DNA of 64,000 bases from Antechinus flavipes (taxonomy: Eukaryota): positions 619,380,001 to 619,444,000 of the forward strand of contig NC_067400.1 of NCBI RefSeq assembly GCF_016432865.1, given 5' to 3'. Below are positions 2,284-24,917 of this stretch, in pieces. Within the stretch, counting starts at the first letter, position 1. Every line of letters begins with the position of its first letter. The notes under the pieces were generated by a model that searched no databases, was not told where the DNA came from, and was given only the letters and a program-made list of their open reading frames with translations. Both the position numbers and the translations under genes were made by a program.

Positions 2284-3569
2284 CTTTCCAGCGGTTGCGG
2301 TACACGGTGGTCCGGCACAGCTCCTGCCCCGGGAGGCACTCCTCCACCGAGCACGGCCCGTGGCTCTCGCAGTGGTAACAGCTCAAGCCCGAGCAAACTG
2401 GGGAGAGAGGGACGGTTCCGTGAGGGGGCTGCTCGGGCCGGGGCTTCGCACCCGCTGAGCCTCGGTTCTTCCTCCGCCCCGACGTTCCGCGGCCCCTATC
2501 CTCCCCGTTGTCCCTCCCTGTTTCAGCCTCCCTCGAAGTCTCTCCATCCCGGCCCTCCCGCTGTCTCCCCCCTTTTCCCCTTCCCCCATCCCTTCAGCGG
2601 CTTCTCACCTGCGTCCTTTCCCTGTCCCTCACTCGAGCTCTGCCCTCCCCCCACCCGTATTCTGTCCCCTCCCGGACCCACCCCTGGCCCTATTCCAGGG
2701 CCCTCGAGTCCCCCCAGCCGGTGTCCTAGCCCTGACTGTTCCCAACCCCCACCTCTGGATCCCGGCCGCCTTCCCCGCCCTCGATCCCTCCAGTGGACCC
2801 TCTTTCGTGGTTTACTCACATCCCTAGCTGCGCTTCCCTTGGGTTACTCATCCCCCCCCCCCCGGGGGCTGCTTCCTTCCCGCACCCCCTCCCCCGCCCC
2901 CAGCTTGACTAAGTTCCTCTATCTCCGGTTTCCCAACCCCGGGTCTGATCTGAGTGCGAGCTGGCGGGGGAGGGGGCGGGAGGACCCCTCCTGAAGCGCC
3001 ACCAGCGCCCGATCCCTCCCGTCGAAGCCCTCAAGTCTCAGACGGGCCCTCGGAGGACTGGCGGCCCCCCTCCCTGCGTCCGCAGGGCTGCCCTCTTCCT
3101 ATTCCCATCCTCCGTGTCTCCCTCCAAAGGGTCCCGACGGCCTGATTTCTCCGAGTCCGCCAGTCTATCCGAGCTCGAAAGCCGGGGTCGGCAGCTGGCT
3201 CCCCGGGCCAACCCAGAGACGCCCCTTCCCGGCCTGTGACTCAGTTCTCTCATCTTTAAAATAACGGGGTTGGATTAGCGGGCTGACAGCCCTCACCCCC
3301 CAGATCTAGGATCCCCCTGGGGAGCGGGGACCCTGAATGAGGGCGTGCTTGCCCCCAGCTGCCTGTCTCTTCCCCTTTCTCTACCATACTTTATTTCTTC
3401 CTGAGTTTCGGTCTGTCTTGGGCTCCCCTCAGGAGAATTACGCGAAGAAGGCTCTTTTTCCCCTCCTTTCTCCAGAAACTCCAGAACCCCCTTCCCAGAA
3501 TCCTCTGGGTCACCCACCTGGAGCCCGGGCTGAAGCCAGCCACAGGAGGCACAGGGTCAGCGCCCTCAT
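2284..3569 (-). CDS. PLAUR: Urokinase plasminogen activator receptor, coding exons 1-2 (partial; rest lies left of the window)
   Basis: Exon 1 3569-3518 (52 nt, MRALTLCLLWLASARAP, signal peptide, GT donor). Exon 2 2397-2284 (114 nt, phase 1-1, AG/GT) gives VCSGLSCYHCESHGPCSVEECLPGQELCRTTVYRNRWK, matching uPAR domain I (human CRVEECALGQDLCRTT). Position and strand relative to IRGC/SMG9/KCNN4 match human. Confidence 0.88.
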
Positions 3570-9260: not shown

Positions 9261-10012
9261 ATTGAGGTACAGTTAACAAAATATTAAGGAAACAAGTTCA
9301 GTGACTCTGGATTAAGAACTGCTGCTAGAACTTTAAAGATGAACTAAGACCTAGAGAAGGTAAATCAACTTTTTATAGAATTATAGGAGTCAGAGGTAGA
9401 TCGTCTGGTCTGATACTTTACAGATTTTATTTTTAATTATTAAATTTTATCTTTTTCAACTACCACTTTTTTTTTTTTTGCGTGGCTCCCCACCCCCCAC
9501 TAGGAAAAAAAAAGAAAAGCAAAACATTTGTAATTATTGGTCTCCTTTATTTCAAAAACAAGGGACTAGCTTGATATGGGGCTTCGATGCAGAAGGATCC
9601 GAGTTCAAATGCTCCCTCAGGTACGAGACGGTATTTTCATCACTTAACCTCACCTGGAAAATGGGGGCTTTAGGTCCATGTCCACCAAGGTCCCTTTCTG
9701 CTGTGCGTCTATGATCTTATGGAAACTGAGGAGAGAGAAAGAAGTGGCCGTGGCCAGGTTTACGCAGGGAATCATGTCAGGCTCCCTGCGGATCCTGGGC
9801 TGGCTCAGACCCCGTCTTGAGCGCGGGCCTGAGAAAAGCCTTTTCAGCATCCTTTTGGAATCTAAGGGGTTACTGTGTTCTGGGTGTGGGTGGTGGCCGG
9901 CCTCGGCTCCACTGTTTGCTTTTCTATCTCGCCCGGCCCCTGGTACCTGGATAAAAGGACCCAATGCCCTCTGTCCCGACTTTCCTCCCGGGCCCTCCCG
10001 TCCTTAGCCACA

Positions 10013-13000
10013 ATGATCTTGGTCCTTGGGCTCCTCTGTATCCTAGTTGCCCCTGGAGGTGAGTAGAGGGGTTTCTCCGGGGGGAGATGTCTGCCTGCCC
10101 TTCTATGTTGTGGCTCCCCTCTTTCTCTTCCCTGGAAGCTCTGGGTCCGTGTTCCAGCCCCACCCTGGACTTGAGATATGATGGGGGCCCCTCCGAGCTC
10201 CCCCGAGCCTCCGTTTCTTATGGGATGTTGGACACAATGATCTCTAAGGGGTCTTTCCGGCGCTGATCTTCTGTGATCTCAAGAATTCTCTCAGATCTGA
10301 GGGAGCTCTCTGGGACTCGGTCTCCTCCAAAAATGAGGGGGTGGATTCTCTCCCGTGACCCTCAGATTCTCCCTCTCATGGTCGCCCCGGCCTCTCCTCC
10401 CCTTCCGAACCCCAGCCCCTGCTCCCTCTGCCCAACACGCCTTCCCGCTGGCCTCCCCACTCCCATTTACCCTCTGTCTTGACCCAGAATGATAGCACTG
10501 GATTCCAACCGAGAGAACTGGGTTCTGGAGCAAACGACTGCTCTCTCAACTTGGGTCATGGCTTAAAAATCTCTGGGTCTTCTACGGCTCCTCTGTAAGC
10601 TGAGGATGACGACCTTGGTGACCTCTAAAGTTCAGGCCAGCTTAAAATCCTATTTTCCTGTTGGTGTATGACTGNNNNNNNNNNNNNNNNNNNNNNNNNN
10701 NNNNNNNNNNNNNNNNNNNNNNNNNNNNNNNNNNNNNNNNNNNNNNNNNNNNNNNNNNNNNNNNNNNNNNNNNNNNNNNNNNNNNNNNNNNNNNNNNNNN
10801 NNNNNNNNNNNNNNNNNNNNNNNNNNNNNNNNNNNNNNNNNNNNNNNNNNNNNNNNNNNNNNNNNNNNNNNNNNNNNNNNNNNNNNNNNNNNNNNNNNNN
10901 NNNNNNNNNNNNNNNNNNNNNNNNNNNNNNNNNNNNNNNNNNNNNNNNNNNNNNNNNNNNNNNNNNNNNNNNNNNNNNNNNNNNNNNNNNNNNNNNNNNN
11001 NNNNNNNNNNNNNTCTCTGCAAAATGGGGCACAAAGAGTAATCCGGGATTCTTCCTCCCTTTTTTTTGTCATGGGCTCCTTAGACGGTCTGTGGAAGTCT
11101 AGGAATCTCTTCTCAAATCCCCCTTTTTTTACTACTTGAAGGAAATGATAGATGTTCAGGGTGCAGTTCTCTCCCCGCCACGAGCCCCGCGTTAAGAACT
11201 CCCGGATGGATGCATCTCTGACCGCGTCACCACTGGGAGCCTCTGATCCCGGGCCACGGGGAGCGGGCGGCCCCTGCCAGTTTCTGGGCCCGTCCCCCTC
11301 CTGTGCGGTGGAGGGGAGCGGGCCAGTGTCTCCCATCACGGTCTCCCACGACTCTCTTCTCCAGCTTCCAGCTCCAATCGGACGACATGCCTGTCCTGCT
11401 CCGACCCGGGAAAGTGCCACGAGATCACGTGCTCCCTGAACCAGAGCTTCTGCCTTCTCAACTACTCCGGCTCCGGTGCGGGGAAGGCCCTGGGGAGGGG
11501 GGCCGGTGGGGGCAGGGACGGGAGGGGCCTGGGAGCAGCCCCCGGATTTAGGGACGGGGAGGGAATGGCCAGGAAGGGGAAGGGCCGGGTGAGAGGTCGG
11601 GGGCAGGGGGGGAGGCGGCGTTTTGGAATGGGAGGGAGGGGGGCCTCTGATCGCACCCCCTGATGCTGTCCCCCCACCGCTCCACCCGCAGACAAAGAAC
11701 TCTTGAAGAACCTCTGCATGGATAAGCAGACTTGCTGGGATTATGTGCACCAGCTGAACAATATGTCCCATACCAACGTCTCCTGTTGCCAAGGAAACTG
11801 CTCAGGTATGGTCAGCTCCAAGGGGAGGAGGGAAGGGGGAGGACCGGGGTGCCCCAGGAGGAGGACCACAGTGCCTCAGGGGGAGGATCACAGTGCCTCA
11901 GGGGGAGGACCAGAGTGCCCCAGGAGGAGGACCACAGTGCCTCAGGGGGAGGACCAGAGTGCCTCAGGGGGAGGACTAGAGTGCCTCAGGGGGAGGACCA
12001 CAGTGCCTCAGGAGGAGGACCAGAGTGCCTCAGGGGGAGGACCAGAGTGCCTCAGGGGGAGGACCAGAGTGCCCCAGGAGGAGGACCACAGTGCCCCAGG
12101 GGGAGGACCACAGTGCCTCAGGGGGAGGACTTCGGGGGCCCTAGGAGGAGGAGGAATCTCCCGAGGGGAGGGGTGGAGTCCCAGCCACTGACTGAACCTG
12201 ACTGTGACAGGAAGTTCTGGAGAACTTTTAGGCCCTGCCCCCTCCCCCTCCTGCCTCTAAGCCCCCTCCTCGCTCTCTCCGCAGAACCCACCACCACCTC
12301 AGGGGAACACAAGAACACCACCTGTTTCTCCTGCCCAGACTCTGGGCCCTGCCACAGCTTCCTCTGTCCTGCCGGGAAGGACACCTGCCTCAGCATGGTG
12401 GAGGCCCAAGGTGAGTGGCCGGAGTTGCCCCGGAGCTCCCTGGGGGCCCACGAGCGCCCTTTCCTGGCCAGGGCAGAACTCCTGGGCCGGCCGTCCTTGG
12501 AGCCGGGACTGCTGTTGGTGCAAAGGCCTGTGCGGGGACGGGGAGGAGCCTCCCTCGTGTCCCCCCCGCTGAAGCCCAAGGGGATCTCTGACTCCCTCCG
12601 TGGCCTGCAGAGAGTCCCAGCCGCCTTCCAGAGCCCGGAGAGACAGAGACAGAGACGCAGAGAGAGCTGAGAGACAGAGGCAGAGCAGGGGGAGACAGGA
12701 GGGGAACGGGACAGAGAGACAGGGAGGAGATAGTAGGGGGGACGGGGAGGAGAAAGCCCGAAGGGAAAAGGAGGCAGAGGCAGAGCAGGATGGGGGAGAG
12801 ACGGAGGAACGCCGAGTCACAAGTCTCCAGTTGGAATTCTGATTCTGTTTAATTTGTCAGGCGTCTAGCGATGGCTCTCTTTGGCAGCCTGTGAGCCCGG
12901 GGCCACTGGGTGCAAACCGAGCCCCCCTCCCCCTCCGGGGCTCAGGCTCAGTGTGAAGGGGGATTTGGACCGGAGGCCTCCTAAGGTCCTTATGATCCCA

Positions 13001-14549
13001 GAGACAGGAGGCACGTGGGGAGGAAGGATGGCGGAAGGAAGCACAGGGGAGAAAGAACAAGGATTGCCGGGGCCCCTGGGAGGGGGGGGTGGGGAGGGGT
13101 TCGGGCACCCGCTTCCTGTCCCGGGGGACACTTCCCCCCCAAGGCCACTGGCGGCTGAGAGGAGGAAGGGAGCCCGGGGGAGGTCCCAGCTGCTGGCCTC
13201 CGGCTGAGCTCCGTCCCCTCCCCCCGCTCTCCCCCCAAGGTGACTTTCGGGGGAAGGACAAGCCTGTCTTCAGAAGGCAGGGCTCCTGCGTGGCGCCGGG
13301 GGACTGCCGGCCCGGGGTTTACAGCCTGTCTTACAGCCCCAGCTGGAGCTTCTGGGCGAATGTCACCTGCTGCAGCGGCGGCCACTGCGGTGAGCCCTCC
13401 CAGCCAGGTACGTGTGCCCGGGCAGGGCGGGGGCAGCGAGAGAGAGAGAAACGGCTCAGGGGGGTCAGGGGGCAGCGAGAGAGGGAGAAACGGCTCAGGG
13501 GGGTCGGGGGCCAGTGAGAGAGGGAGAAACGGCTCAGGGGGGTCGGGGGGCAGTGAGAGAAGGAGAAACGGTTAAGGGGGATCAGGGGGGTTGGGAGGGC
13601 AGGCCCATGAGACAGCCCCCCACCTTCGGTGCTGCTCCCCAGGACCAGATGCCCCTTAGCACCAACCTCCTGAAGGGCGGGTGTGTGGGGCGTAGGGTGT
13701 CTGAGAGCACGGAAGCCAGGGACCGGCCTCCGAGACTCCGGGGAGCCTTCTCTGAGGGGTTCCTCTCCTGTACCCCCCAGAGTCCCTGCCGAAGGGTACC
13801 GCCAGTGACTTCCTGTGTCCCGTCTGCTCCCCAAACGAGCCCTCCTGTGATGAAAACTCATACATGCTCTGCTCTCGAGGAGAGACTTCTTGTGTTAGCG
13901 TGAACGTGGCTCAGCTCGGAGGTAACGGGCATGGGAGGAAGGAGGGAGAGACGATGGAGAGGCAAGAGGGTTTGGGGGCCCCCAGCCAGGAGGGCCTGGG
14001 ACTGGACGTAGGGAAGAGGGAGCTGCTCAGTCTCTGGACAAGTAGCCCTTCCCCCTTTGCCCATCCATCTTTAAAATGAAGGGATAGAGTCCCAGCCCTG
14101 AAGTCGGGAGGACCTGAGTTCAAATCTGGTCTCAGACACTTAACGCATCCTAGGGACCCTGGGCAAGTCACTTAACCCCAGTTGACTCAGCAAAACAGAC
14201 AAAGAAATAAATGAATAAAATGACGGCATCAGACCTGAAGGTCCTGGCTGGTGCTCCGGGAGGGGCCATTTTCTGCCCCCGGGCTGGTGGGCTCCAAACT
14301 CCCCAATCCATCCTCTCCCCAGGGAATCAGAGAAGCCTCTTCCGAGGGTGCGGCTCGAAGGACCTCTGCCAGCTGCCCGAGAACCTCACCCTGGGTCTGG
14401 ACTACCAGCTTGTCGGGAAGCCCAACTGCAGCTCCTCCCGGCGGGCCGTGCTGGGCTCCAAGTGCCGGCACAACGCAGCCGCTGGCCCTGGGGGAGGCGC
14501 TCTCCTCCCGGCCCTGCTGGCCGCGGGGATGGCCGCTTGGCTGGCCTAA
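10013..14549 (+). CDS. Unnamed GPI-anchored Ly6/uPAR-family protein with three LU domains (about 310 aa, 7 exons)
   Basis: Exons 10013-10058, 11365-11475, 11692-11805, 12285-12410, 13240-13407 (alternative donor after 13389), 13781-13921, 14323-14549. All introns are GT-AG, phase 1; total 933 nt open to TAA. Kozak gccacaATG, signal peptide MILVLGLLCILVAPGA, LU cysteine spacing (CLSC..C..C..C / C..C..CCQGNC; CFSC../CCSGGHC; CPVC../RGCGSKDLC), GPI-type tail NAAAGPGGGALLPALLAAGMAAWLA. Confidence 0.88.
10675..11013. other. Assembly gap (339 N) in intron 1 of the LU gene
   Basis: Run of N. Confidence 1.
11837..12131 (+). repeat. 22-nt minisatellite (GGGGGAGGACCACAGTGCCTCA), about 13 copies, LU gene intron 3
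   Basis: Direct tandem units visible. Confidence 0.9.
13428..13585 (+). repeat. About 39-nt tandem repeat x4, LU gene intron 5
   Basis: gggggcagcgagagagagagaaacggctcaggggggtca repeated. Confidence 0.8.
14060..14215 (+). mobile_element. WSINE1-like tRNA-derived SINE
   Basis: ggaggacctgagttcaaatctggtctcagacacttaac...ctgggcaagtcacttaacccc followed by an A-rich tail. Confidence 0.8.
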
Positions 14550-14707
14550 GCCTTCCCACCACCCTCCCCAGCCCAGCTAGGAGCAGCCGCCTGTTCTGAC
14601 AGCAGGGGCTCACCTCGAGTCTAGAATCCTTCAGAGCCTGCTGGGACAAACCCCAGCTCGGAGGACCCCGCCCCAAATCTCAGAACCCCGAGGCGTGCAC
14701 AGCAGCC

Positions 14708-14713
14708 AATAAA
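14708..14713 (+). terminator. Polyadenylation signal of the three-LU-domain gene
   Basis: AATAAA 159 nt after the stop codon. Confidence 0.7.
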
Positions 14714-15311
14714 TTATACATCGGTCAGTTTCCTCAAACGGCCAATGTCTCTTCTCAACTTCTCTCCCTCCCTCTCCCGCTCGGCTCGTCCTTCACACCT
14801 GCGCTGGGTCCTCGGCTCCTCTGGGAATTTTTAGTCCCCAAGGGGCAGCCTTTGAGCCTGACATTCTCTTTGAAGACTGAGGAGATGGGGCCTGGGGCTG
14901 CTTGGGAGGAGAAGGCAGCTGGGGAGTCTTGGGGTTCAGGAACCTCGAATTGCTGTTAGGCTAAACTGAACCCATGTTTTATTCAGGACCCGGTACTGGT
15001 CCTAGGCTGCCTGAAAGTGGCTTGGGCTGAGCTGATGGGCCGATGGGCTCCGTGGCTAGACAGGACGCCTTACCTCCCATTCCGGGAAATCCTCCTGGAG
15101 CACCTCCAACAGCAGCAGCTCTCCACCTGGAACTTCTCAAGGCGTCGCATATACCATACACAGGCACAGAATCATGGGAGGGCTTGGGAGTCGGGACTTT
15201 GGTTCAAATCCTAGGTCGTTTCCCTACTCCATCTCACTTCCTAGCTCTGTGATCTTGGACTTAATCTCTTTAGACTTGTTTCCTCATCTGTCCAATGAGG
15301 ATGCCTTAATT

Positions 15312-16165
15312 TCTCAGTACTTCTAAACCTCCAGTCTCGCTCCGACCCTTTCCATTCAGTTGAAAAAACCAAGGACTAAAGAAGGAAACGAACACGGCAA
15401 AGACCACCTAGGCAAATTTTGTTAGAAGGTGCAGAGAGAGAAAAATGATGAGAGAGACAGAGACAGACAGATAGACAGACACACACACACACAGCCAGAG
15501 AGAGAGAAAAACTACAGGGAGAAGAATTTCTCAGCACTTCTAAACCTTCAGTCTCACTCCAACCATTTCTATTCATTTAAAAAAACCAGGACTAAAGAAG
15601 GAAATGGACCCGGCAAAGACCACCCAGGCGAATTTTGTTAGAAGGTGCAGAGAGAGAAAAATGATGAGAGAGACAGAGACAGAGAGATAGACAGACACAC
15701 ACACACACACACAGCTAGAGAGAGAGAAAAACTACAGGGAGAAGAATTTCTCAGCACTTCTAAACCTTCAGTCTCACTCCAACCATTTCCATTCATTTAA
15801 GAAAAACAGGACTAAAGAAGGAAATGGACCCGGCAAAGACCACCCAAGCGAATTTTGTTAGATAAGGAAGAGAGGGAAAAATGATGAGAGAAACAGAGAC
15901 AGAGACAGAGACAGATAGACAGACACACAGCCAGAGAGAGAGAGAAACAACAGGAGAAGGATTTCTCAGCACTTCTAAACCTCCAGTCTCACTCCAGCCA
16001 TTTCCATTCAATTGAGGAAACCAGGACTAAAGAAGGAAATGGACACGGCAAAGATCACCCAGGCAAATTTTGTTAGGAGAGGCAGAGAGGAAAATGATGA
16101 GAGAAACAGACAGACAGACAGACACACACACACACACAGCCAGAGAGAGAAAAACACAAGGAGAA
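15312..16165 (+). repeat. About 217-bp tandem repeat x4 with internal GA/CA microsatellites
   Basis: Units start (tctcagYacttctaaacc) at 15312, 15529, 15749 and 15964. Confidence 0.92.
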
Positions 16166-16554
16166 GAAGAGGAAAAAGGGAGAAGAGAGAGAGAGAGAGA
16201 CAGAGAAAAAGAAAGAGACGGGAAAGGGAGGAGAGGTAGAGAGGAGAGAGAAAGGTGAATAGGACAAGGAGAGAGACATTCATGTATGTGACTGACATCT
16301 CTCTAGTAGGCCGTGGGTTTCCCTAGACTGTGAATTCCTTAAACATAAAGAGACCATGTCTTATTTACCTCAGTTTCCTGTATGGAACCCTGTGCTCAGT
16401 GGTAGTTCAGTAACTGTTTGCTGAAAGAATCAAGGGCCAATCATTTGGTCAGTGGGGGGACCCATCTCTCCCTTCCCCTCCCCCCTCGGGCTCCACTCAT
16501 GAGGTCACCCCAGTGGGCATTGTTGGCCTGGGTCCCTGCTGGTGTTACCCGGCT

Positions 16555-16693
16555 GGGCGGGGCCAGCCAATCAGCCGCTAGTCCCTCTTATAATGGCCCC
16601 TAGCAACGGGGTATGAGTCCAGGCAAACGGGGAGAGACCCCGTGGGCGGGGAGAGTCTGAGGGGTGTGGGAAATTCCTCTGTGAATGTGAGTT
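16555..16693 (+). promoter_or_regulatory. Candidate IRGC promoter and non-coding first exon (GC box, CCAAT, RFX X-box half-site, donor at 16687)
   Basis: GGGCGGGGCC at 16555, CCAATCAGC at 16567, CCCTAGCAAC at 16598-16607, AAT|GTGAGTT at 16684-16693; about 3 kb upstream of the IRGC ATG. Confidence 0.55.
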
Positions 16694-17989
16694 GATTTGG
16701 GGGGAAATGGTACCCAATGTGGGTGAGAAAGGGCAATTCCGAGGGAAGAAGGGAAGAGAAGTCCCGGGTACTTAGACGCTAGGTCCAATTCTCCCGGTTG
16801 CCCTTTGGATCCCCGTAGTCTCAGCCACCCAGAGCCAATCACACGGTGGAGGGGAGGAGGGAGCCCAGGGTTAGGTAGCAAGAGCTCAACCTCATTAAGT
16901 TCTCCAACAGACCCCGAAAACTTGGGAGAGGAGAGGTCTGGTCAGGGCCAAGAGGAAAGAGTCCGCTTCTCGGTCTAGTCTTGATGGAGCCGCACGGCTG
17001 CCCCTCGGTTTCTCGAGATGAGAGACCGTCGGGTTTGAGGCAGAGTCCATATGGGCCTGGGCTGAGCTCTCTTGCCTGTGCTAGCTGTCTCAGAGATGCT
17101 AGGCCCTTCGTGGAAACGAGGGCAGGAGAAATCGGGGGGCTGTGGCCAAGTCCCACTCCACAGTTCCTTCTCCAGACCCCAGCTGTTAGCTCTGTTGCTC
17201 CGATGCCCCAGACCCTGCTCAGAAAAGAGAAATCCCCGGTGTGGGGAGTTTGAGCCCAATCCCCTCTATCAATTCAGATAGCCCGTGGAGAGAAGTTTGG
17301 GGTGTGGGAAGAAGGGTTTCCTATGAGGTCCCCACCTGAATACCTGGAGCTCTCTACGAAGGGCTAGATCCTAGACGTGGGAGTCCAAGGCCCTTTGTCC
17401 CACGGGCCCTCCGGACTGCTTATTCAAACACTCGGAACTTTTCGAGGTCGAGAGAGGCGGAGGGAGGTGGTGGCCGGGCCGTGGCCAGGCCAGGGTGGGA
17501 GGGAACCAGCCTTAGCCCCTGAAGTATCTCAAGTGAGGAGGGGTCGGGGTGAGTGGGAGAGGGGCAGAGAAGCGAGACTGTGATTCTGTTGACTTTTTAT
17601 GGACTGTGGCTTGCTGCTTAGACAATCCCGGGCCCCCCATGCACCAGAGGAGGGGAAGACAGCTTATAAGTGTTGGAAGGGTGTGGTTGGGGTCCCCTTC
17701 CTTCATTTCCATACTCAATCATACTCAAACCCCACCTCCAAAAAAAAAAAAACACAAACAAACAAAAACTCCAGAGCCATCCATGAGACTGGGGGAAGGA
17801 ATGGGACGTAGAGCTAATTCCCCCGTCTCTTTGGAGAGACTGACTGATAAACTGTCACTCCTGGACCCCATGCTTACAGGGGAGAAATAGTCGGAGTTCC
17901 CCACATTCTATTGCTTATATATCTCCTCTCATCTCAGACTTCCTGGTCTTCCATCTCCTGGGGACCCTGAGATAGAAACAAAGGCAAAA

Positions 17990-18565
17990 TGGAAGGGGAT
18001 CCAGGAAGAGAGGAAGACATAGGGTGGGGAGATCCAATGGAAAGGAACCCAGAGAGGAAGAGATGGGATGGGGAGATCCAATGGAGGAGGACCCAGAAAG
18101 AGAGGAAGACCTGGGATGGGGAGATCCAGTGGAAGGGGACCCAGAGAGGAAGACATGGGATGCAGAGATCCAATGGAAGGGAACCCAGAGAGGAAGACAT
18201 GGGATGGGGAGATCCAATGGAAGGGAACCCAGAGAGGAAGACATGGGATGGGGAGATCCAATGGAAGGGAACCCAGAGAGGAAGACATGGGATGGGGAGA
18301 TACGGTGGAAGGGGACCCAGAGAGGAAGACATGGGATGCAGAGATCCAATGGAAGGGAACCCAGAGAGGAAGACATGGGATGGGGAGATCCAGTGGAAGG
18401 GGACCCAGAGAGGAAGACATGGGATGGGGGAGATCCAGTGGAAGGGGACTCAAAAAGAGAGGAAGACATGGGATGCAGAGATCCAATGGAAGGGAACCCA
18501 GAGAGGAAGACATGGGATGGGGAGATCCAGTGGAAGGGAACCCAGAGAGGAAGAGATGGGATGGG
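17990..18565 (+). repeat. 44-nt minisatellite (GGGAACCCAGAGAGGAAGACATGGGATGGGGAGATCCAATGGAA), about 13 copies
   Basis: Period 44 (e.g. 18179 to 18223); accounts for the six repetitive ORFs in the track. Confidence 0.92.
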
Positions 18566-19578
18566 GAATTCCAATGGGTGGGCCATCTCAGGGAATCATC
18601 CCTCCCTTTGGTAATAAAGGGGAGAAATGGGGGTCAGAACCATGGGCTCAGAGATCTCTCAGACAGGAAGGGACTTTTAGTCTGACCTCTAGTATTTTAC
18701 AGAGAAGGAAACTGAGGTCTAGAGTATGAGAGGATTAAAAGCTGGGATCCACATGCCCTATCATTGGCGCCATGTTGGGGTCAGACCAAACTGCCTCGTG
18801 GGTCTAAATGTGAAAGGCTGTGGGAATGACAATAGTTCTGGAGTTAAAAGATCCCACCTGAGTGGTGAGATCTCCTATCCTTCATCTTCTGTGGCCTCAG
18901 TTTCCCTTCCCTGTAGGGACTGGCTGAAGCTGGTTCTCCCAGTCCTTCCCCAGTCTTAATGTCTACTGCTTCCCGAGCCAGCTGCCCACTGATTTGCTCT
19001 GAGAGTCCCTCCATTGCTTTCTTTACCTGTCGGGAAACTGGGAGAAGAATCCCTGCTTTCCCGGCAAAGATGGTAGGCAGCGAGACTGAAATGAGGATGG
19101 GGCAAGGCCTCCAGAAACCCCAGATGTAAGGAGGTCCCGCACCCTCACGCAGACGGGAGCGTCTGGGGGCCGGGCAGGGGGACGAGAAGGCAGAGCCCGA
19201 GGAGAGAAGAGGGGAACAGGATCCGCAAGCGAGCGGCCGAGCTGGGAGCCGTTTCAGGCCCATCCGTCAGGGACGGGCCGCCCGGCCAAGGGCCCGGTCA
19301 GAGACGCCGGGTCAGAGACCCCGCCATCCGCCGGTGCTTCCGAGGCTACCTCCCGTAGCGTAGCCTGGGTAAGGGAGGGGACGGGGCGTTTGCTGGGCCG
19401 CTGGGGCCGGCCGCCTTTCCGCTAACCGCGTCTCCGTCCCCCCTCCCCGTCTCTCTCTCTCTCTCTCTCTCCCTCCCGCCCGTCTCAGGGCCTAGGTGGT
19501 GTGAGCGGCCTGCCCCCTACCCCAAGGAGCACACGCATCGAGACTCCCCCACTCCCCCCCACTCTCCCCAGGGGCGCA

Positions 19579-20976
19579 ATGGCGTCCAAGTCACAAGCCC
19601 CCCCGACCGAGGAGGAGAGCACCATCCTCATGGCTAAGGAAGAGCTCGAAGCTCTTCGGACGGCCTTCGAGCTGGGGGATATCCCGAAGGCTGCCTCCCG
19701 CCTCCGGGAGCTTCTGGGCTCAGCTGAGAGTAGCCGCCTCGATGTGGGCGTGACCGGCGAGTCCGGGGCCGGCAAGTCTTCCTTGATCAACGCCCTTCGA
19801 GGGATCGGGGCCGAGGATCCCGGCGCGGCTCGGACTGGCGTCATCGAGACCACAACCCAGCCCACCCCCTACCCCCACCCCCAGCTGCCTGAGCTCATGC
19901 TGTGGGACCTGCCAGGGGCCGGCTCACCCGGCTGCCCAGCCGACAAGTACCTGAAGCAGGTAGACTTTGCTCGCTACAATTTCTTCCTCCTGGTCTCACC
20001 CCGCCGCTGTGGGGCCGTGGAGACCCGGCTGGCGACCGAGATCCTCCGTCAGGGCAAGAAATTCTACTTCATCCGCACCAAGGTGGATGAGGACCTGGCG
20101 GCTTCTCGCACCCAGCGCCCCTCGGGCTACAGCGAGAGCGCTGTCTTACAGGAGATCCGAGACCACTGCGCGGAGCGCCTGCGAGCCGCCGGCGTCCAGG
20201 ACCCCCGGATCTTCCTCGTGTCCAACCTGTCGCCGGCCCGCTACGACTTCCCTCTGCTGGTGGCCACCTGGGAGCGGGAGCTGCCGGCCCACCGCCGCCA
20301 CGCCGGGCTGCTGTCCCTGCCCGACATCTCCCTCCAGGCCCTGCAGAAGAAGAAGGATGCCCTGCAGGAGCAGGTGCTGAAGACCGCGCTGGTGTCCGGG
20401 GTCATCCAGGCCTTGCCCGTGCCCGGGCTGGCGGCCGCCTACGACGACGCCCTGCTGATCCGCTCCCTGCGGGGCTACCACCGCAGCTTCGGCCTGGACG
20501 ACGACTCCCTGGCCAGGCTGGCCGAGCAGGTGGGCAAGCAGGCCGGCGACCTGCGCTCCGTGATCCGCTCGCCCCTGGCCACCGAGGTCTCGCCGGAGGC
20601 GGTGCTGCGCATGTACGCCCAATCATCGGACGGGGCCATGCGCGTGGCCCGGGCCTTCGAGAAGGGCATCCCCGTGTTCGGGACACTGGTGGCCGGGGGG
20701 ATCTCCTTCGGGACCGTCTACACCATGCTACAGGGCTGCCTTAACGAGATGGCCGAGGACGCCCAGCGTGTCCGGATCAAAGCCCTGGAAGAGGAGGTCA
20801 CCTCCCCTGGCTCCGACGCCCGCCTCGACGTCGCCAGCGGGCCCGGGTTGGAGAAGAGGGGGGCAGGCGAGGGCGGCGGGGAGGATCCTCCAATCTCAGC
20901 CCGCCGGAAGCTTGGACTGCTGCTCAAGTACATTCTGGAGAGCTGGAAAAAACGGGATGGGGTCGAAGACAAATAA
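19579..20976 (+). CDS. IRGC: Immunity-related GTPase cinema (interferon-inducible GTPase 5), intronless CDS, 465 aa
   Basis: MASKSQAPPTEEESTILMAKEELEALRTAFE...GESGAGKS...WDLPG...RTKVD...RKLGLLLKYILESWKK closely follows recalled human IRGC. Acceptor at 19487-19488; AATAAA at 20972-20977. Confidence 0.96.
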   Translation: MASKSQAPPTEEESTILMAKEELEALRTAFELGDIPKAASRLRELLGSAESSRLDVGVTGESGAGKSSLINALRGIGAEDPGAARTGVIETTTQPTPYPHPQLPELMLWDLPGAGSPGCPADKYLKQVDFARYNFFLLVSPRRCGAVETRLATEILRQGKKFYFIRTKVDEDLAASRTQRPSGYSESAVLQEIRDHCAERLRAAGVQDPRIFLVSNLSPARYDFPLLVATWERELPAHRRHAGLLSLPDISLQALQKKKDALQEQVLKTALVSGVIQALPVPGLAAAYDDALLIRSLRGYHRSFGLDDDSLARLAEQVGKQAGDLRSVIRSPLATEVSPEAVLRMYAQSSDGAMRVARAFEKGIPVFGTLVAGGISFGTVYTMLQGCLNEMAEDAQRVRIKALEEEVTSPGSDARLDVASGPGLEKRGAGEGGGEDPPISARRKLGLLLKYILESWKKRDGVEDK

Positions 20977-21134
20977 AAACGGCCACCTCTCCCCCAAAGA
21001 AAGAAAACCCCCCTCCTGACCACTCCACCCCACCATCCCCCATTCCCATTCCCCCACCCCTGTCCCCTGTCCCTACCAAAAAAAAATTCATGTGAAGAAA
21101 CCAATGGAAGGCTCCCGACTGCTTCCAGACCGGC

Positions 21135-21520
21135 CGGGGCCCGGCGCGGGAGGGAGGGAGGGGGGAGTGTTGGGATGGAGGGGGGGAGGGGGAAGAGAGG
21201 GAGAGGTGTTGGGATGGCGCGGGGGGGGGAGGGGGAAGAGAGGGAGGGGTGTTGGGATGGAGCGGGGGGGAGGGGGAAGGGAAGGGGAGAGGGGTGTAGG
21301 GATGGAGCGGGGGCGGGGAAGGGAGGGAGGGGTGTTGGGATGGAGTGGGGGGGAGGGGGAAGAGAGGGAGGGGTGTTGGGATGGAGCGGGGGGGAGGGGG
21401 AAGAGAAGGGGAGAGGGGTGTCGGGATGGAGCGGGGGCGGGGAAGGGAGGGAGGGGTGTTGGGATGGAGCGGGGGGGGGAAGGGAGGGAGGGGTGTTGGG
21501 ATGGAGCGGGGGGGGGGGGA
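21135..21520 (+). repeat. G-rich about 38-nt minisatellite (GGGTGTTGGGATGGAGCGGGGG...), G-quadruplex-prone
   Basis: About 10 degenerate copies just downstream of IRGC. Confidence 0.85.
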
Positions 21521-21810
21521 GGAGAGCCCATTCAAGGGCTGGTTTCACTTTCTCTGTCCCATAGACGCGTCCTTGCGGGGAAGGGGGCCACTAGGGAGAC
21601 GGGGATTCCCGGCGGGAAGCAAGTGTAAACGAGGGAAATTAGAACTGGGGAACCTGCAGAAAAGGCGTCCCTTTGGGGCGACCTCCCAACCCCCCAAAAT
21701 CTCTCCTTCTGTGGATTCCTAAGGGACCTTTGATGGCAATCCTCTGGCTCCACGCCAACACCCCCGCCCCCTCCTTCGAAGATTCCCCCTCCCCCTCCCC
21801 GAGGAGCCAA

Positions 21811-21960
21811 CCAATCAGCGTTCGTTTCTCAATACAATGGACCCTAGCAACAGGTCTGGCCGAGAAGCCAACAGAATCGGTGGGGATAAGATGCTCCAGC
21901 ACTAGAAGAGGAAGCACAAGAGGGGCCAGGGTCAAAGGAAGGCCCTGCTAAATGTGAGTT
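21811..21960 (+). promoter_or_regulatory. Candidate promoter and non-coding first exon of the second IRG gene (CCAAT, RFX X-box half-site, donor at 21954)
   Basis: CCAATCAGC at 21811, AATGGACCCTAGCAAC at 21836-21851, AAT|GTGAGTT at 21951-21960; same spacing as the module at 16567. Confidence 0.55.
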
Positions 21961-22912
21961 AGGGAGGGGGCTGATGAGGCAGAATCGCCCCCGGCCCCCA
22001 ACTCCCTGCCCCCACCCCCTTCTATACCCTTCCAGCGGGAAGTTTCAGAGGAGTTTCAGCCCCTAAAAACTCCCTAAACTCCCCCCAACTGGCCCCAGTC
22101 CAGTGTGGCTCAGCCCCGGCCCCTTTCATGCTCCATCTCTGCAAAGGGCAACTCTGGGGAAGGATTTTTTTTTTGGGGGGGGGGGGAAGGCGCATGAATC
22201 TGTGTAACGGTGGTCGGAAGGCTTTCTGAGTGACTGAGTAGTGAGGGGTCTGTGGCCTGGGCTGGGATTTGGGCCAGGTAGGAAGTTCTTGAGGATGATT
22301 GGGAGGGTAATTTAGGCTGGTGATTATTGTGACTTTGTGATGGTTACTTGGTTGGCTGAGTGAACACAGAATGAGCTTTTGGCCCGGCTTTTACTGCTCT
22401 TTTTTGGGGGGTGTGTGTGGGAGAAAAAGAGACAGAGATAAGAGACAAAGAAACAGAGACAAAGAAACAGAAACAGGGAGAGACAGAGACACAGAAAGAG
22501 ACAGAAACAGACAAATAAGAGACAGATACAAAGAAACAGACACATAGAGCGACAGAGAAAGGGAAAGTGTGAGAGAGAGTGAGAGTACCTGTGTTAAAGC
22601 ATCTCTCTCACTTCAGCCTCCTGGGGCCCCCACTCTGTTAAGCCGGGGGAGACTCACTACTTGTCCTCTTGTTGAGGACTCGGAGAAGAGCGCCAACAGT
22701 CAATAAGCAATAAGGACCGACTGTGTGTCAGCCATACAGAGGAAGGCAAAAGACAATGTCTCCTGTCAAGGAGCTTACGGTCTGAGGGAGAGCAGCACAA
22801 ACCCAGCTACGATCGAGTTAGAGACGAGTTAGAGAAACTGGAAACAAAATGCTGGTACTGGGAGGGCTCACAAAAGATTTCCTGGACAGAGGGAGATTTT
22901 AGCTGGAACTTC

Positions 22913-23095
22913 TTTTTTAATTATTATAGCGTTTTATTGACAAAACACATGCACGGGTAATTTTTCAGCATTGACCTTTGCAAAACCTTCTGTTCCAACT
23001 TTTCCCCTCCTCCCCTCCCCCCTCCAGATGGCAAGCGGTCCCATCCATGTTAAATATGTTAAAGTATATGTTAAATTATATATATATATATATCT
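22913..23095 (-). mobile_element. LINE-1 3' end fragment
   Basis: Homologous to 4133-4290 (ccagatggca...catgttaaatatgttaaagt). Confidence 0.7.
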
Positions 23096-24917
23096 TTTAG
23101 CTGGAACTTGCAGGAAGCAGACGTGAGGAGAGCAGAGGACCAGCCAGGAAGCCAGGGCCTCTCAACCGAAGGAAACAGAGATGAGGAGGCTCAGAAGAGA
23201 AAGCAGAGTGGAGGGGGAGGACAGGGAATGAGGACTTAAGAGTCTTCCAGCTTCACAGCTTTATGGGATCCATTTAGAGCTAGTTTGTTTAGAAACCTCA
23301 CTTTACAGATAAGGAAACTGAGGCTCAGAGGGAGGATCGATCACATGGAGAGGGCCATGGGATCCTAGAGCTACAGCTGGAAGGGACCTTCAAGGCCATC
23401 TAGTCATATTTGCTCACTTACAGATGAGGAAACTGAGACAGGGGGAAGTGGTTTGTCTGGTCAGTTCAGATGGCAAGCAGAAGATTTGAACCCAGGACCA
23501 CTGACAACAAATTTACCCTTTCCCACTGTCTCCTGGTAGTACATGCATTACTATCCCTATTTTACCGAGGAAACCAGCTCAGCAAGGGACGGAAAAATAA
23601 TTGTTCAAGATTAAGCACAGCTTGTGAAATTTGGAGGCAGGAAAGGTGCCCTAGGATCCAGAGCAGCCAAATCTGGACCAAACTTCCTTCCATCCGAGTT
23701 GGAAGAGACCTTAGGGGCCATTTAGGCCGATCCCTTTATTTTACAGAAGAAACCGTTACTGAAAAAAGGCGTCAGGGAACTTGCCCAAGACGGGGACTCG
23801 GGGCTCTGAGCTCTTGTAAGATCCCGTCTCTCCCGGGACGGCCCCAGGAGCACTGGGATCTAGGTGCTTCAGGCCACTCGGGCCTAGGTCCTTGACAGGG
23901 TTGGCCAGAAGCAGGGCTCCCAGTCTCAGGCAGGCAGGGCTCCAGCCCGCAGGAAGCATTAGTGCTTCAGGCAACTGAAGGGAGTGAGCTGGGGGAGGGA
24001 GAAGGTGGGGGAAGGCCCGGCTTGTTTTCCGGCCAGTTCGCCTGCCCTGGTTCCCAGGAGTCTTTCTCCCCAGTCACGTCTCTGATGCTCTCTGGAGAAG
24101 GGGGGCTTGCTGGGGGCTGGGATGTGTGTGGCAGGATGGGCCAGGAAACCCCCGCCCGTGACAGAGGTGGGGGATCCTTCTCACACTCAGGGCCTCGCTC
24201 AAGCGCATTCACACCTGGGACTCCCTGCGGGGATGCGACTCCACACTCTCACTATTAGAATCCAAGGGCAGATTATTAGAGTAATGGGCAATGTGGCAGC
24301 AGCCAAGGGCGAACTTGCCTTGGGATCGGATTTGAGCCCTGTGTTCCATACACGTCTCAAACCTGAGCAGGTTTCCGGAGCTGTTTTGCCTCCATGGAAG
24401 AGCCCCCCACACAAGGAGAGCTCTGCCCCCAGAGAGCATCATTTTGAACACAATCTGAGCTCACCCGGGTAGGAACTCCCAGTATGGGAAAGCTGTCTGC
24501 CCGAAGTGATTTGCACCATTCTTCAGGAGAGAATTACCCGAGGCCGTTTGTCCAGGGTCGCCCAGTACTGCTCACCCTGTGAGCCAATGAGTTGTTGTGA
24601 TGGATTCCACCCTGACTTAGCTCAGACACTGCCTCAGATCCTTCCCCTCATGGCGCTTCAGTCATCTCCAGGGTGTCCGCTCCCTCCCACCCCATTGGGA
24701 GTTTCTTGGGCAGAGGCTGACGTGGTCCGTCCTTCCTTTTTCCAGCTTATTTTGCAGATGAAACTAAGACAGTTAAATGACTTTCCCATCACACGGCTAC
24801 TAAGCCTCTGAAACCAGATCTGAATCCAGGTCCTCCCGACAGAGCTACCCACACGGCAGCTAGCTGCCCCATTAAGCAAACTCTCCTTTACTGACAGCCA
24901 GGATGGACCCGAGGGAC

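Follow-up and report, generated by a model that had tools for sequence, protein, structure and literature searches.

Several LU-domain genes lie together in mammalian genomes, and the order reported for mouse is Lypd5, Plaur, Pinlyp, Lypd3, Tex101, Lypd10, Lypd11, Cd177 and Lypd4; no further LU gene separates Lypd5 from Plaur (PMC4839075). uPAR, the product of PLAUR, has been stated to be encoded by the only three-LU-domain gene in mammals (PMC6337849). Its cysteines are distributed over the domains in an 8-10-10 pattern, and its first domain (D1) lacks the 7-8 disulfide (PMC6337849, PMC6600238), as is the case for the N-terminal domain in every multi-LU protein of the 19q13 cluster (PMC6600238). 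Moreover, two exons per LU domain and introns in phase 1 are the rule for this multi-LU cluster (PMC6600238). PINLYP is predicted not to be anchored by glycosylphosphatidylinositol (GPI) (PMC4839075).

This paper describes a gene on the + strand of a 64,000-nt stretch of the genome of the marsupial Antechinus flavipes (contig NC_067400.1, positions 619,380,001 to 619,444,000; the whole stretch is referred to as the window, and positions are counted from its first letter). The gene, designated here the PLAUR-adjacent LU gene, lies between PLAUR and IRGC. It is very likely a functional, transcribed gene for an N-glycosylated three-LU surface protein of the secretory pathway that is probably GPI-anchored, and the marsupial orthologue of an unnamed therian gene of the PLAUR-IRGC interval. 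A preliminary description of the window had named uPAR as the recognised three-LU protein in humans, in line with its designation as the sole mammalian three-LU gene (PMC6337849), and had proposed a second three-domain receptor that was either marsupial-specific or lost in eutherians.

Gene structure, transcription and predicted product

Direct reading of the window yields seven exons with a joined frame of 933 nt, including the TAA stop, that encodes 310 amino acids (aa); all six introns run from GT to AG and all six are in phase 1. Exon 1 (9998..10058, coding 10013-10058) comprises a short 5' untranslated region (UTR), the ATG at 10013 and the signal peptide, and is followed by the donor GT at 10059. 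D1 is encoded by exon 2 (11365..11475; first half, Cys 1-5), which is nearest to the first half of domain a of the eutherian homologues described below, and by exon 3 (11692..11805; second half, Cys 6-10, with a CCxGNC motif), which is divergent and partly helical in the structural model. Exon 4 (12285..12410) contributes a Thr-rich linker and the first half of the second domain (D2); the second half of D2 (GSCVA...CCSGGxC), encoded by exon 5 (13240..13407), is the most conserved part of the family. The third domain (D3) starts in exon 6 (13781..13921) and is completed in exon 7 (14323..14739, coding to 14549), which encodes the second half of D3 without a CC motif, an extra cysteine (Cys283), the GPI-type signal and the stop codon (14547-14549), and continues into the 3'UTR with an AATAAA polyadenylation signal (14708..14713). 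Besides the sequence, these positions rest on a spliced RNA contig for all seven exons, and on alignment for exon 2, and RNA contigs terminate 11-26 nt 3' of the AATAAA. The TATA-like element GATAAAAG (9950..9957, + strand), some 40 nt 5' of where the RNA contig begins, is a candidate core promoter.

Transcription was assessed by comparison of window positions 9700-14900 with four public runs, including X16, a transcriptome-sized contig set (66 Mb) of the window's own species, X1, genomic DNA of the same species (contigs totalling ~3.1 Gb), and X5, from a close relative that is ~98% identical. A single 1,138-nt contig of X16 spans 9998-14739 with the six introns removed exactly at the predicted GT..AG sites, and in the fourth run, X17, exons 5-7 are spliced and the contig ends at 14724. 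The assembly gap (N) at 10675..11013 lies wholly in intron 1, 617 nt past the donor and 351 nt short of the acceptor. X1 and X5 cover exons and introns alike, and both halt at the gap edges. Since the X16 contig joins exons 1 and 2 across the gap (10058>11365), no exon of the main transcript lies within it and the frame is continuous. Read-through of the 216-nt intron 2 meets a stop codon. The preliminary description had called the gene intact and had listed the seven exons, the phase-1 GT-AG introns, the 933-nt frame, a signal peptide, three LU domains, a GPI-type tail and AATAAA; all of these were confirmed, and the full-length X16 contig together with the spliced exons 5-7 of X17 bears out the intactness.

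Two positions differ between the runs and the window. At 13853, all four runs have G and the window has A (Glu213 to Gly, E213G), and at 12352, T in X16, X1 and X5 replaces the C of the window without changing the amino acid (X17 has no coverage there). These differences are either rare alleles carried by the reference individual or small reference errors, and the frame is unaffected by them. In X5, a contig of 11776-13444 carries the final 27 nt of exon 3 directly followed by exon 4, with intron 3 removed, and then continues through intron 4, which hints at partly spliced RNA in an otherwise genomic-looking run.

An upstream ATG at 9964-9966 precedes the start codon by 49 nt; in the window it is not in frame and could open a short upstream reading frame, and the RNA contig begins downstream of it, at 9998. 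The equivalent ATG of Sminthopsis crassicaudata is in frame, and the NCBI model of that species starts there, with 16 additional residues. The introns contain G-rich minisatellites in intron 3 (11834-12130; 13.5 copies of a 22-bp unit) and in intron 5 (13429-13589; 4.1 copies of a 39-bp unit), both with ~90% match between copies. In addition, interspersed repeats occur in intron 6 (14050-14223) and intron 4 (12484-12831), with word depths in the genomic run X1 of up to ~1.1 million and ~2,900, respectively; many loose ends and spurious joints were seen in X1 at these two stretches.

The predicted product has a hydrophobic N-terminus and ten N-x-S/T sites. Its mature part contains 29 cysteines in three blocks of 10 (residues 24-89), 10 (104-182) and 9 (201-283), and all three LU domains are each spread over two exons with a phase-1 intron between them. 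D1 and D2 have ten cysteines each and run from an initial CxxC to a terminal CCxGxxC, and D3 has the CxxC and 8+1 cysteines and lacks the CC pair. The C-terminus consists of small residues (HNAAAGPGGG) followed by a 16-residue hydrophobic end without a cytoplasmic tail; it is of GPI type by inspection, and the same design is seen by inspection in all orthologues. The number of mature cysteines is odd, both in the window (29) and in eutherians (37). The extra Cys283, which precedes the likely GPI omega site by four residues, is kept in most species, the last cysteine of Dromiciops gliroides being replaced; as a speculation, Cys283 may be a free thiol or may link a disulfide-bonded dimer.

Orthologues in marsupials and eutherians

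Homologues were collected by a search with exon 5 against 1.84 billion representative sequences, and by later searches with the orthologues that it returned. The exon-5 search yielded a 314-aa protein of Petaurus breviceps, and a search with the latter yielded a 329-aa protein of S. crassicaudata (LOC141564502). The long multi-stretch matches of the exon-5 search were bacterial or shrimp repeat proteins and were discarded. In local BLAST alignments, the window protein is end-to-end 83% identical to the Sminthopsis protein and 58% identical to that of Petaurus, and both have the same three LU domains. They represent the same gene in the same PLAUR-IRGC slot and are automatic predictions that have remained unstudied. 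The protein models from tammar, Dromiciops and Trichosurus comprise D2-D3 only. In Dromiciops (10001-12655 of its locus), the D2 exon follows ~240 bp after exon 1 and both D1 exons are absent, resulting in a two-LU protein.

The position of the gene is conserved in four other marsupials. PLAUR was recognised on the - strand of the window by its exon 1 (3518-3569, ATG 3569-3567), which is head to head with the LU gene, and by its exon 2 (2284-2397, motif EEC..GQ.LCRTT), which is 97% identical to the UPAR_LY6 neighbour gene of Sminthopsis. The distance between the two ATGs is 6,444 nt, as the preliminary description had noted (~6.4 kb). Downstream of the LU gene, IRGC is a single-exon open reading frame on the + strand (19579..20976), the Sminthopsis orthologue of which carries PF05049 IIGP. 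The order PLAUR(-), LU gene(+) and IRGC(+, 465 aa, IIGP) is kept in Sminthopsis, Dromiciops, tammar and Petaurus.

Selective constraint was estimated with the Nei-Gojobori method between the window and the Sminthopsis coding sequence, which was rebuilt from its locus and translates exactly into the database protein. For the whole gene, dN (nonsynonymous divergence) is 0.081 and dS (synonymous divergence) 0.194 (dN/dS 0.42), and the synonymous excess is significant (Fisher p = 8e-5). The ratio is 0.9 for D1, 0.32 for D2, 0.30 for D3 and 1.0 for the C-terminal tail, and all 29 mature cysteines are kept between the two species. Judged from this comparison of coding sequences, the PLAUR-adjacent LU gene is constrained yet fast-evolving.

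Protein searches returned about 55 eutherian homologues at 35-40% identity. Nearly all are annotated as 'uncharacterized protein LOC...', and the few with automatic names are called 'PINLYP-like', 'PLA2 inhibitor gamma subunit B-like' (PLA2, phospholipase A2) or 'CD177 isoform X2'. Carriers include bats, carnivores, ruminants, pig, camel, cetaceans, Old World monkeys, lorises, lemurs and tree shrew, as well as squirrels, hystricognath rodents, mole, hedgehog, tenrecs, manatee and xenarthrans. Among the matches of these protein searches, that with the colobus query included, there was none from a hominoid, Mus or Rattus. That no human gene is known between PLAUR and IRGC, as stated in the preliminary description, agrees with the lack of a named human or mouse counterpart in the protein searches and with the published human and mouse catalogue, which has no LU gene on that flank of PLAUR (PMC4839075).

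Full-length eutherian members have 413-435 aa and four domains, a-b-c-d, with a cysteine pattern of 10-8-10-9; examples of such four-LU proteins are those of Saccopteryx, Bubalus (LOC102410032) and Piliocolobus (LOC111525246). In the alignment, D1 corresponds to a, D2 to c and D3 to d, and a GPI-type tail with small residues is common to both groups. The eutherian proteins (~415-430 aa) differ by the extra 8-Cys domain b between a and c, which is without a marsupial counterpart. Over its first half, D1 shows 46% identity to a and 33% to c, the score of D3 is higher with d than with b, and no remnant of domain b was found anywhere in the 64,000-nt window. A domain-level maximum-likelihood tree was ladder-like with nested long branches and was not used to decide between loss of b in marsupials and its gain in eutherians. 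Reptile '10-8-10' three-LU proteins (PMC6337849) were considered as a-b-c orthologues and rejected, as the family motifs are absent from their printed sequences and 'GSCVA' is not found in any of the supplements.

The 431-aa gene of the bat Saccopteryx has a 332-aa UPAR_LY6 gene as its head-to-head neighbour, 9.4 kb away. The first exon of this neighbour reads MGVPLLLPLLLLVQTCIPG, and the human uPAR signal peptide is printed as MGHPPLLPLLLLLHTCVPASWG in the supplement of PMC6337849. Because of this match the neighbour was identified as PLAUR, and because the eutherian gene is head to head with PLAUR there, it is the positional orthologue in at least Saccopteryx. The notion of a marsupial-specific or eutherian-lost gene does not hold against these ~55 mostly four-domain homologues and the position of the bat copy.

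The locus of Macaca nemestrina (11300-23514) is represented by a 291-aa model that omits the first-half exons of a, b and c. The macaque DNA contains intact-looking exons for a, c and d and for the second half of b, with only the first half of b undetected at E <1e-3; the model may reflect early decay in catarrhines, or may simply be poor.

Fold, family membership and alternative explanations

Family membership was analysed with the Sminthopsis orthologue. Of 28 family members, 9 are matched by PF00021 (best E 4e-10) and 1 by PF02988 (PLA2_inh; E 0.019). Searches of PDB sequences with the orthologue (phmmer) and with the family profile (hmmsearch) gave no match, and in particular no uPAR chain at E up to 10. 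The AlphaFold2 model that was built for the Sminthopsis protein from the family alignment reached a predicted local distance difference test (pLDDT) score of 75 and a predicted template modelling (TM) score (pTM) of 0.56, and comprises three beta-rich domains at 23-86, 106-181 and 199-275. With Foldseek on the PDB, uPAR ranked first (E 2e-6), followed by C4.4A, CD177 and TEX101, all at probability 1.0. Over the whole chain the TM score of the model to uPAR is 0.32-0.40 with a root mean square deviation (rmsd) of ~11 Å, and D2-D3 alone superpose. VIA-align placed D2-D3 on uPAR residues 92-271 (Z 10.8) and matched D1 with single LU domains at Z 5.7-9.0 (Prod1 at Z 9.0, snake toxins, CD59). Among the Swiss-Prot models, mouse and human PINLYP were the best matches (residues 100-275; E 4e-10 and 1e-8), with an rmsd of 4.6-4.9 Å over ~185 residues, 21-22% identity and TM scores by hit of 0.56-0.62. 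LYPD8 and more than 15 snake PLA2-inhibitor gamma (PLI-gamma) proteins followed, with uPAR entries interleaved from rank 5. A three-finger LU fold is thus clearly predicted for all three domains, and on the model the protein is a two-LU module of the PINLYP/PLI-gamma type (D2-D3), preceded by one additional N-terminal LU domain and followed by a GPI-type tail.

Several observations weigh against the interpretation as a three-LU, GPI-anchored orthologue of a therian gene. The profile, PDB-sequence and model results stem from an 83%-identical orthologue rather than from the window protein itself, and PF00021 scores 17.7 bits on that orthologue, below the cut-off of 24.8. Single-exon translations of the window had no match in Pfam or the PDB, half-domains being too short. 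Confidence in the interdomain geometry of the model is only moderate, as its pTM indicates. The GPI anchor is probable by eye only. D1 is absent in Dromiciops and missing from the tammar and Trichosurus models, and may be weakly constrained, given its dN/dS of ~0.9 in one species pair. Finally, eutherian synteny was directly seen in one species only, and the buffalo, macaque, tree shrew and Myotis loci have neither PLAUR nor IRGC within their 10-kb flanks.

The resemblance of D2-D3 to PINLYP and the snake inhibitors raises the alternative of a membrane-tethered, PLI-gamma/PINLYP-type inhibitor or receptor of secreted PLA2, endogenous or from venom. PINLYP and PLI-gamma are the best structural matches to D2-D3, with a tandem 10-Cys and 8-Cys LU packing that is alike in the model, and the NCBI automatic names of several orthologues ('PLA2 inhibitor gamma subunit B-like', 'PINLYP(-like)') point the same way. 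The second domain of PINLYP presumably lacks the CC motif as well. However, identity is only 16-22%, a third, N-terminal domain is lacking in PINLYP and PLI-gamma, and PF02988 is found in that single family member. A true PINLYP was not among the sequence matches of the family searches. Moreover, snake PLI-gamma is soluble in serum and PINLYP is predicted to have no GPI anchor (PMC4839075), whereas the present protein has a GPI-type tail; the PINLYP locus is on the other side of PLAUR (PMC4839075), and the LU gene described here is on the IRGC side. This alternative is considered unlikely.

In its uPAR-like form, the proposal of a second three-domain receptor amounts to a PLAUR duplicate, specific to marsupials or lost in eutherians, in which three domains surround a central ligand cavity. 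The gene shares with PLAUR the three LU domains, the seven exons, the phase-1 introns and the GPI-type tail, and adjoins it in inverted orientation; uPAR chains are the top PDB fold matches, D2-D3 are packed similarly to DII-DIII in the superposition mentioned above, and the three-domain form has so far been seen in marsupials only. Nevertheless, there is no detectable sequence similarity to uPAR by phmmer or family profile, and the cysteine pattern is 10-10-9 instead of 8-10-10: D1 keeps the 7-8 Cys pair that is missing from uPAR D1, and D3 has no CC motif. The PLAUR exon layout is present, as the preliminary description had stated, but is generic to the multi-LU cluster (PMC6600238). The global arrangement of the model also differs, as its low whole-chain TM score and high rmsd show, and PINLYP and PLI-gamma models fit better than those of uPAR. 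Eutherian orthologues exist and mostly have four domains, and a domain number of 2 to 4 across species speaks against an obligatory three-domain cavity. A PLAUR duplicate is therefore very unlikely. What stands of the earlier proposal is a second three-LU protein in a mammal; what does not is its restriction to marsupials, its loss in eutherians and its reading as a uPAR-like receptor, the protein being closer to PINLYP and PLI-gamma. No named eutherian gene of equal domain count was found, and the claim is modified rather than refuted.

Drift of a transcribed gene towards a pseudogene without constrained protein function could account for the dN/dS of ~0.9-1.0 in D1 and tail, the domains lost in some lineages, the lack of a hominoid or muroid orthologue among the matches and the weak Pfam signal, but is very unlikely in view of the open frame and the full set of cysteines in long-diverged species (window, Sminthopsis and Petaurus), the overall dN/dS significantly below 1 (~0.3 for D2-D3), and splice sites that are all canonical and used.

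CD177, TEX101 and C4.4A share with the PLAUR-adjacent LU protein the superfamily, the gene cluster and the tandem LU domains on a GPI anchor. They differ in that their fold matches are weaker (E 1e-4 to 1e-3), and that their 7-8 disulfide rule (PMC6600238) fails here.

The favoured interpretation remains that of a surface protein encoded by a therian gene of the PLAUR-IRGC interval, with an architecture a-b-c-d in eutherians, a-c-d in marsupials and c-d only in Dromiciops, as suggested by the alignments. D2-D3 would form a compact two-LU module of the PINLYP and snake PLI-gamma type, packed like uPAR DII-DIII, and D1 would be an extra N-terminal LU domain with all ten cysteines. By analogy with uPAR, CD177, TEX101, C4.4A and PLI-gamma, the protein would be displayed at the surface via a GPI anchor, would have no enzymatic activity and might bind a protein ligand with the finger loops of the D2-D3 module.

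Neighbouring genes and significance

The coding sequence of IRGC (19579-20973 in the window, 17816-19210 in the Sminthopsis locus) is 98.4% identical between the two species at the DNA level and 100% at the protein level. Its dS is 0.068, compared with 0.19 for the LU gene, and the flanking DNA shows ~70-85% identity; the synonymous sites of IRGC look unusually conserved. In tammar, a second IIGP-family gene (406 aa) follows IRGC, as it does in the window (28.5-33.8 kb); because tammar has the same pair, the tandem IRG genes are not peculiar to A. flavipes.

Literature searches with the automatic names and among papers on PLAUR, IRGC and LU domains gave no description of a PLAUR-adjacent LU family, which is thus known solely as automatic predictions. 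The lack of any orthologue from human, other apes, mouse or rat among the matches explains why the gene has remained unstudied. It adds a new member to the known multi-LU family, and is an expressed counter-example to three general statements made in reviews of the LU family: that uPAR is the sole three-LU gene in mammals, that CD177 is the four-domain one, and that the first domain of every multi-LU protein lacks the 7-8 disulfide. These statements are contradicted by three domains in the marsupial form, four in the eutherian form and ten cysteines in the first domain.

Fast evolution, domain gain and loss, and the lack of a hominoid or muroid orthologue among the matches would fit a role at immune or reproductive interfaces. 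More tentatively, and as a possibility rather than an expectation, a therian-wide family of multi-LU receptors may exist beside PLAUR, of which the marsupial form would be a second three-LU receptor with a ligand of its own (e.g., a secreted PLA2, a protease, or a gamete or pathogen protein), with a domain number of 2, 3 or 4 that is tuned by lineage, and which may have been overlooked as it is missing from apes, mouse and rat. For the study of how LU domains are acquired and lost, the family offers a natural series of two-, three- and four-domain proteins, and for livestock, bats, carnivores and marsupials it supplies a new candidate surface receptor.

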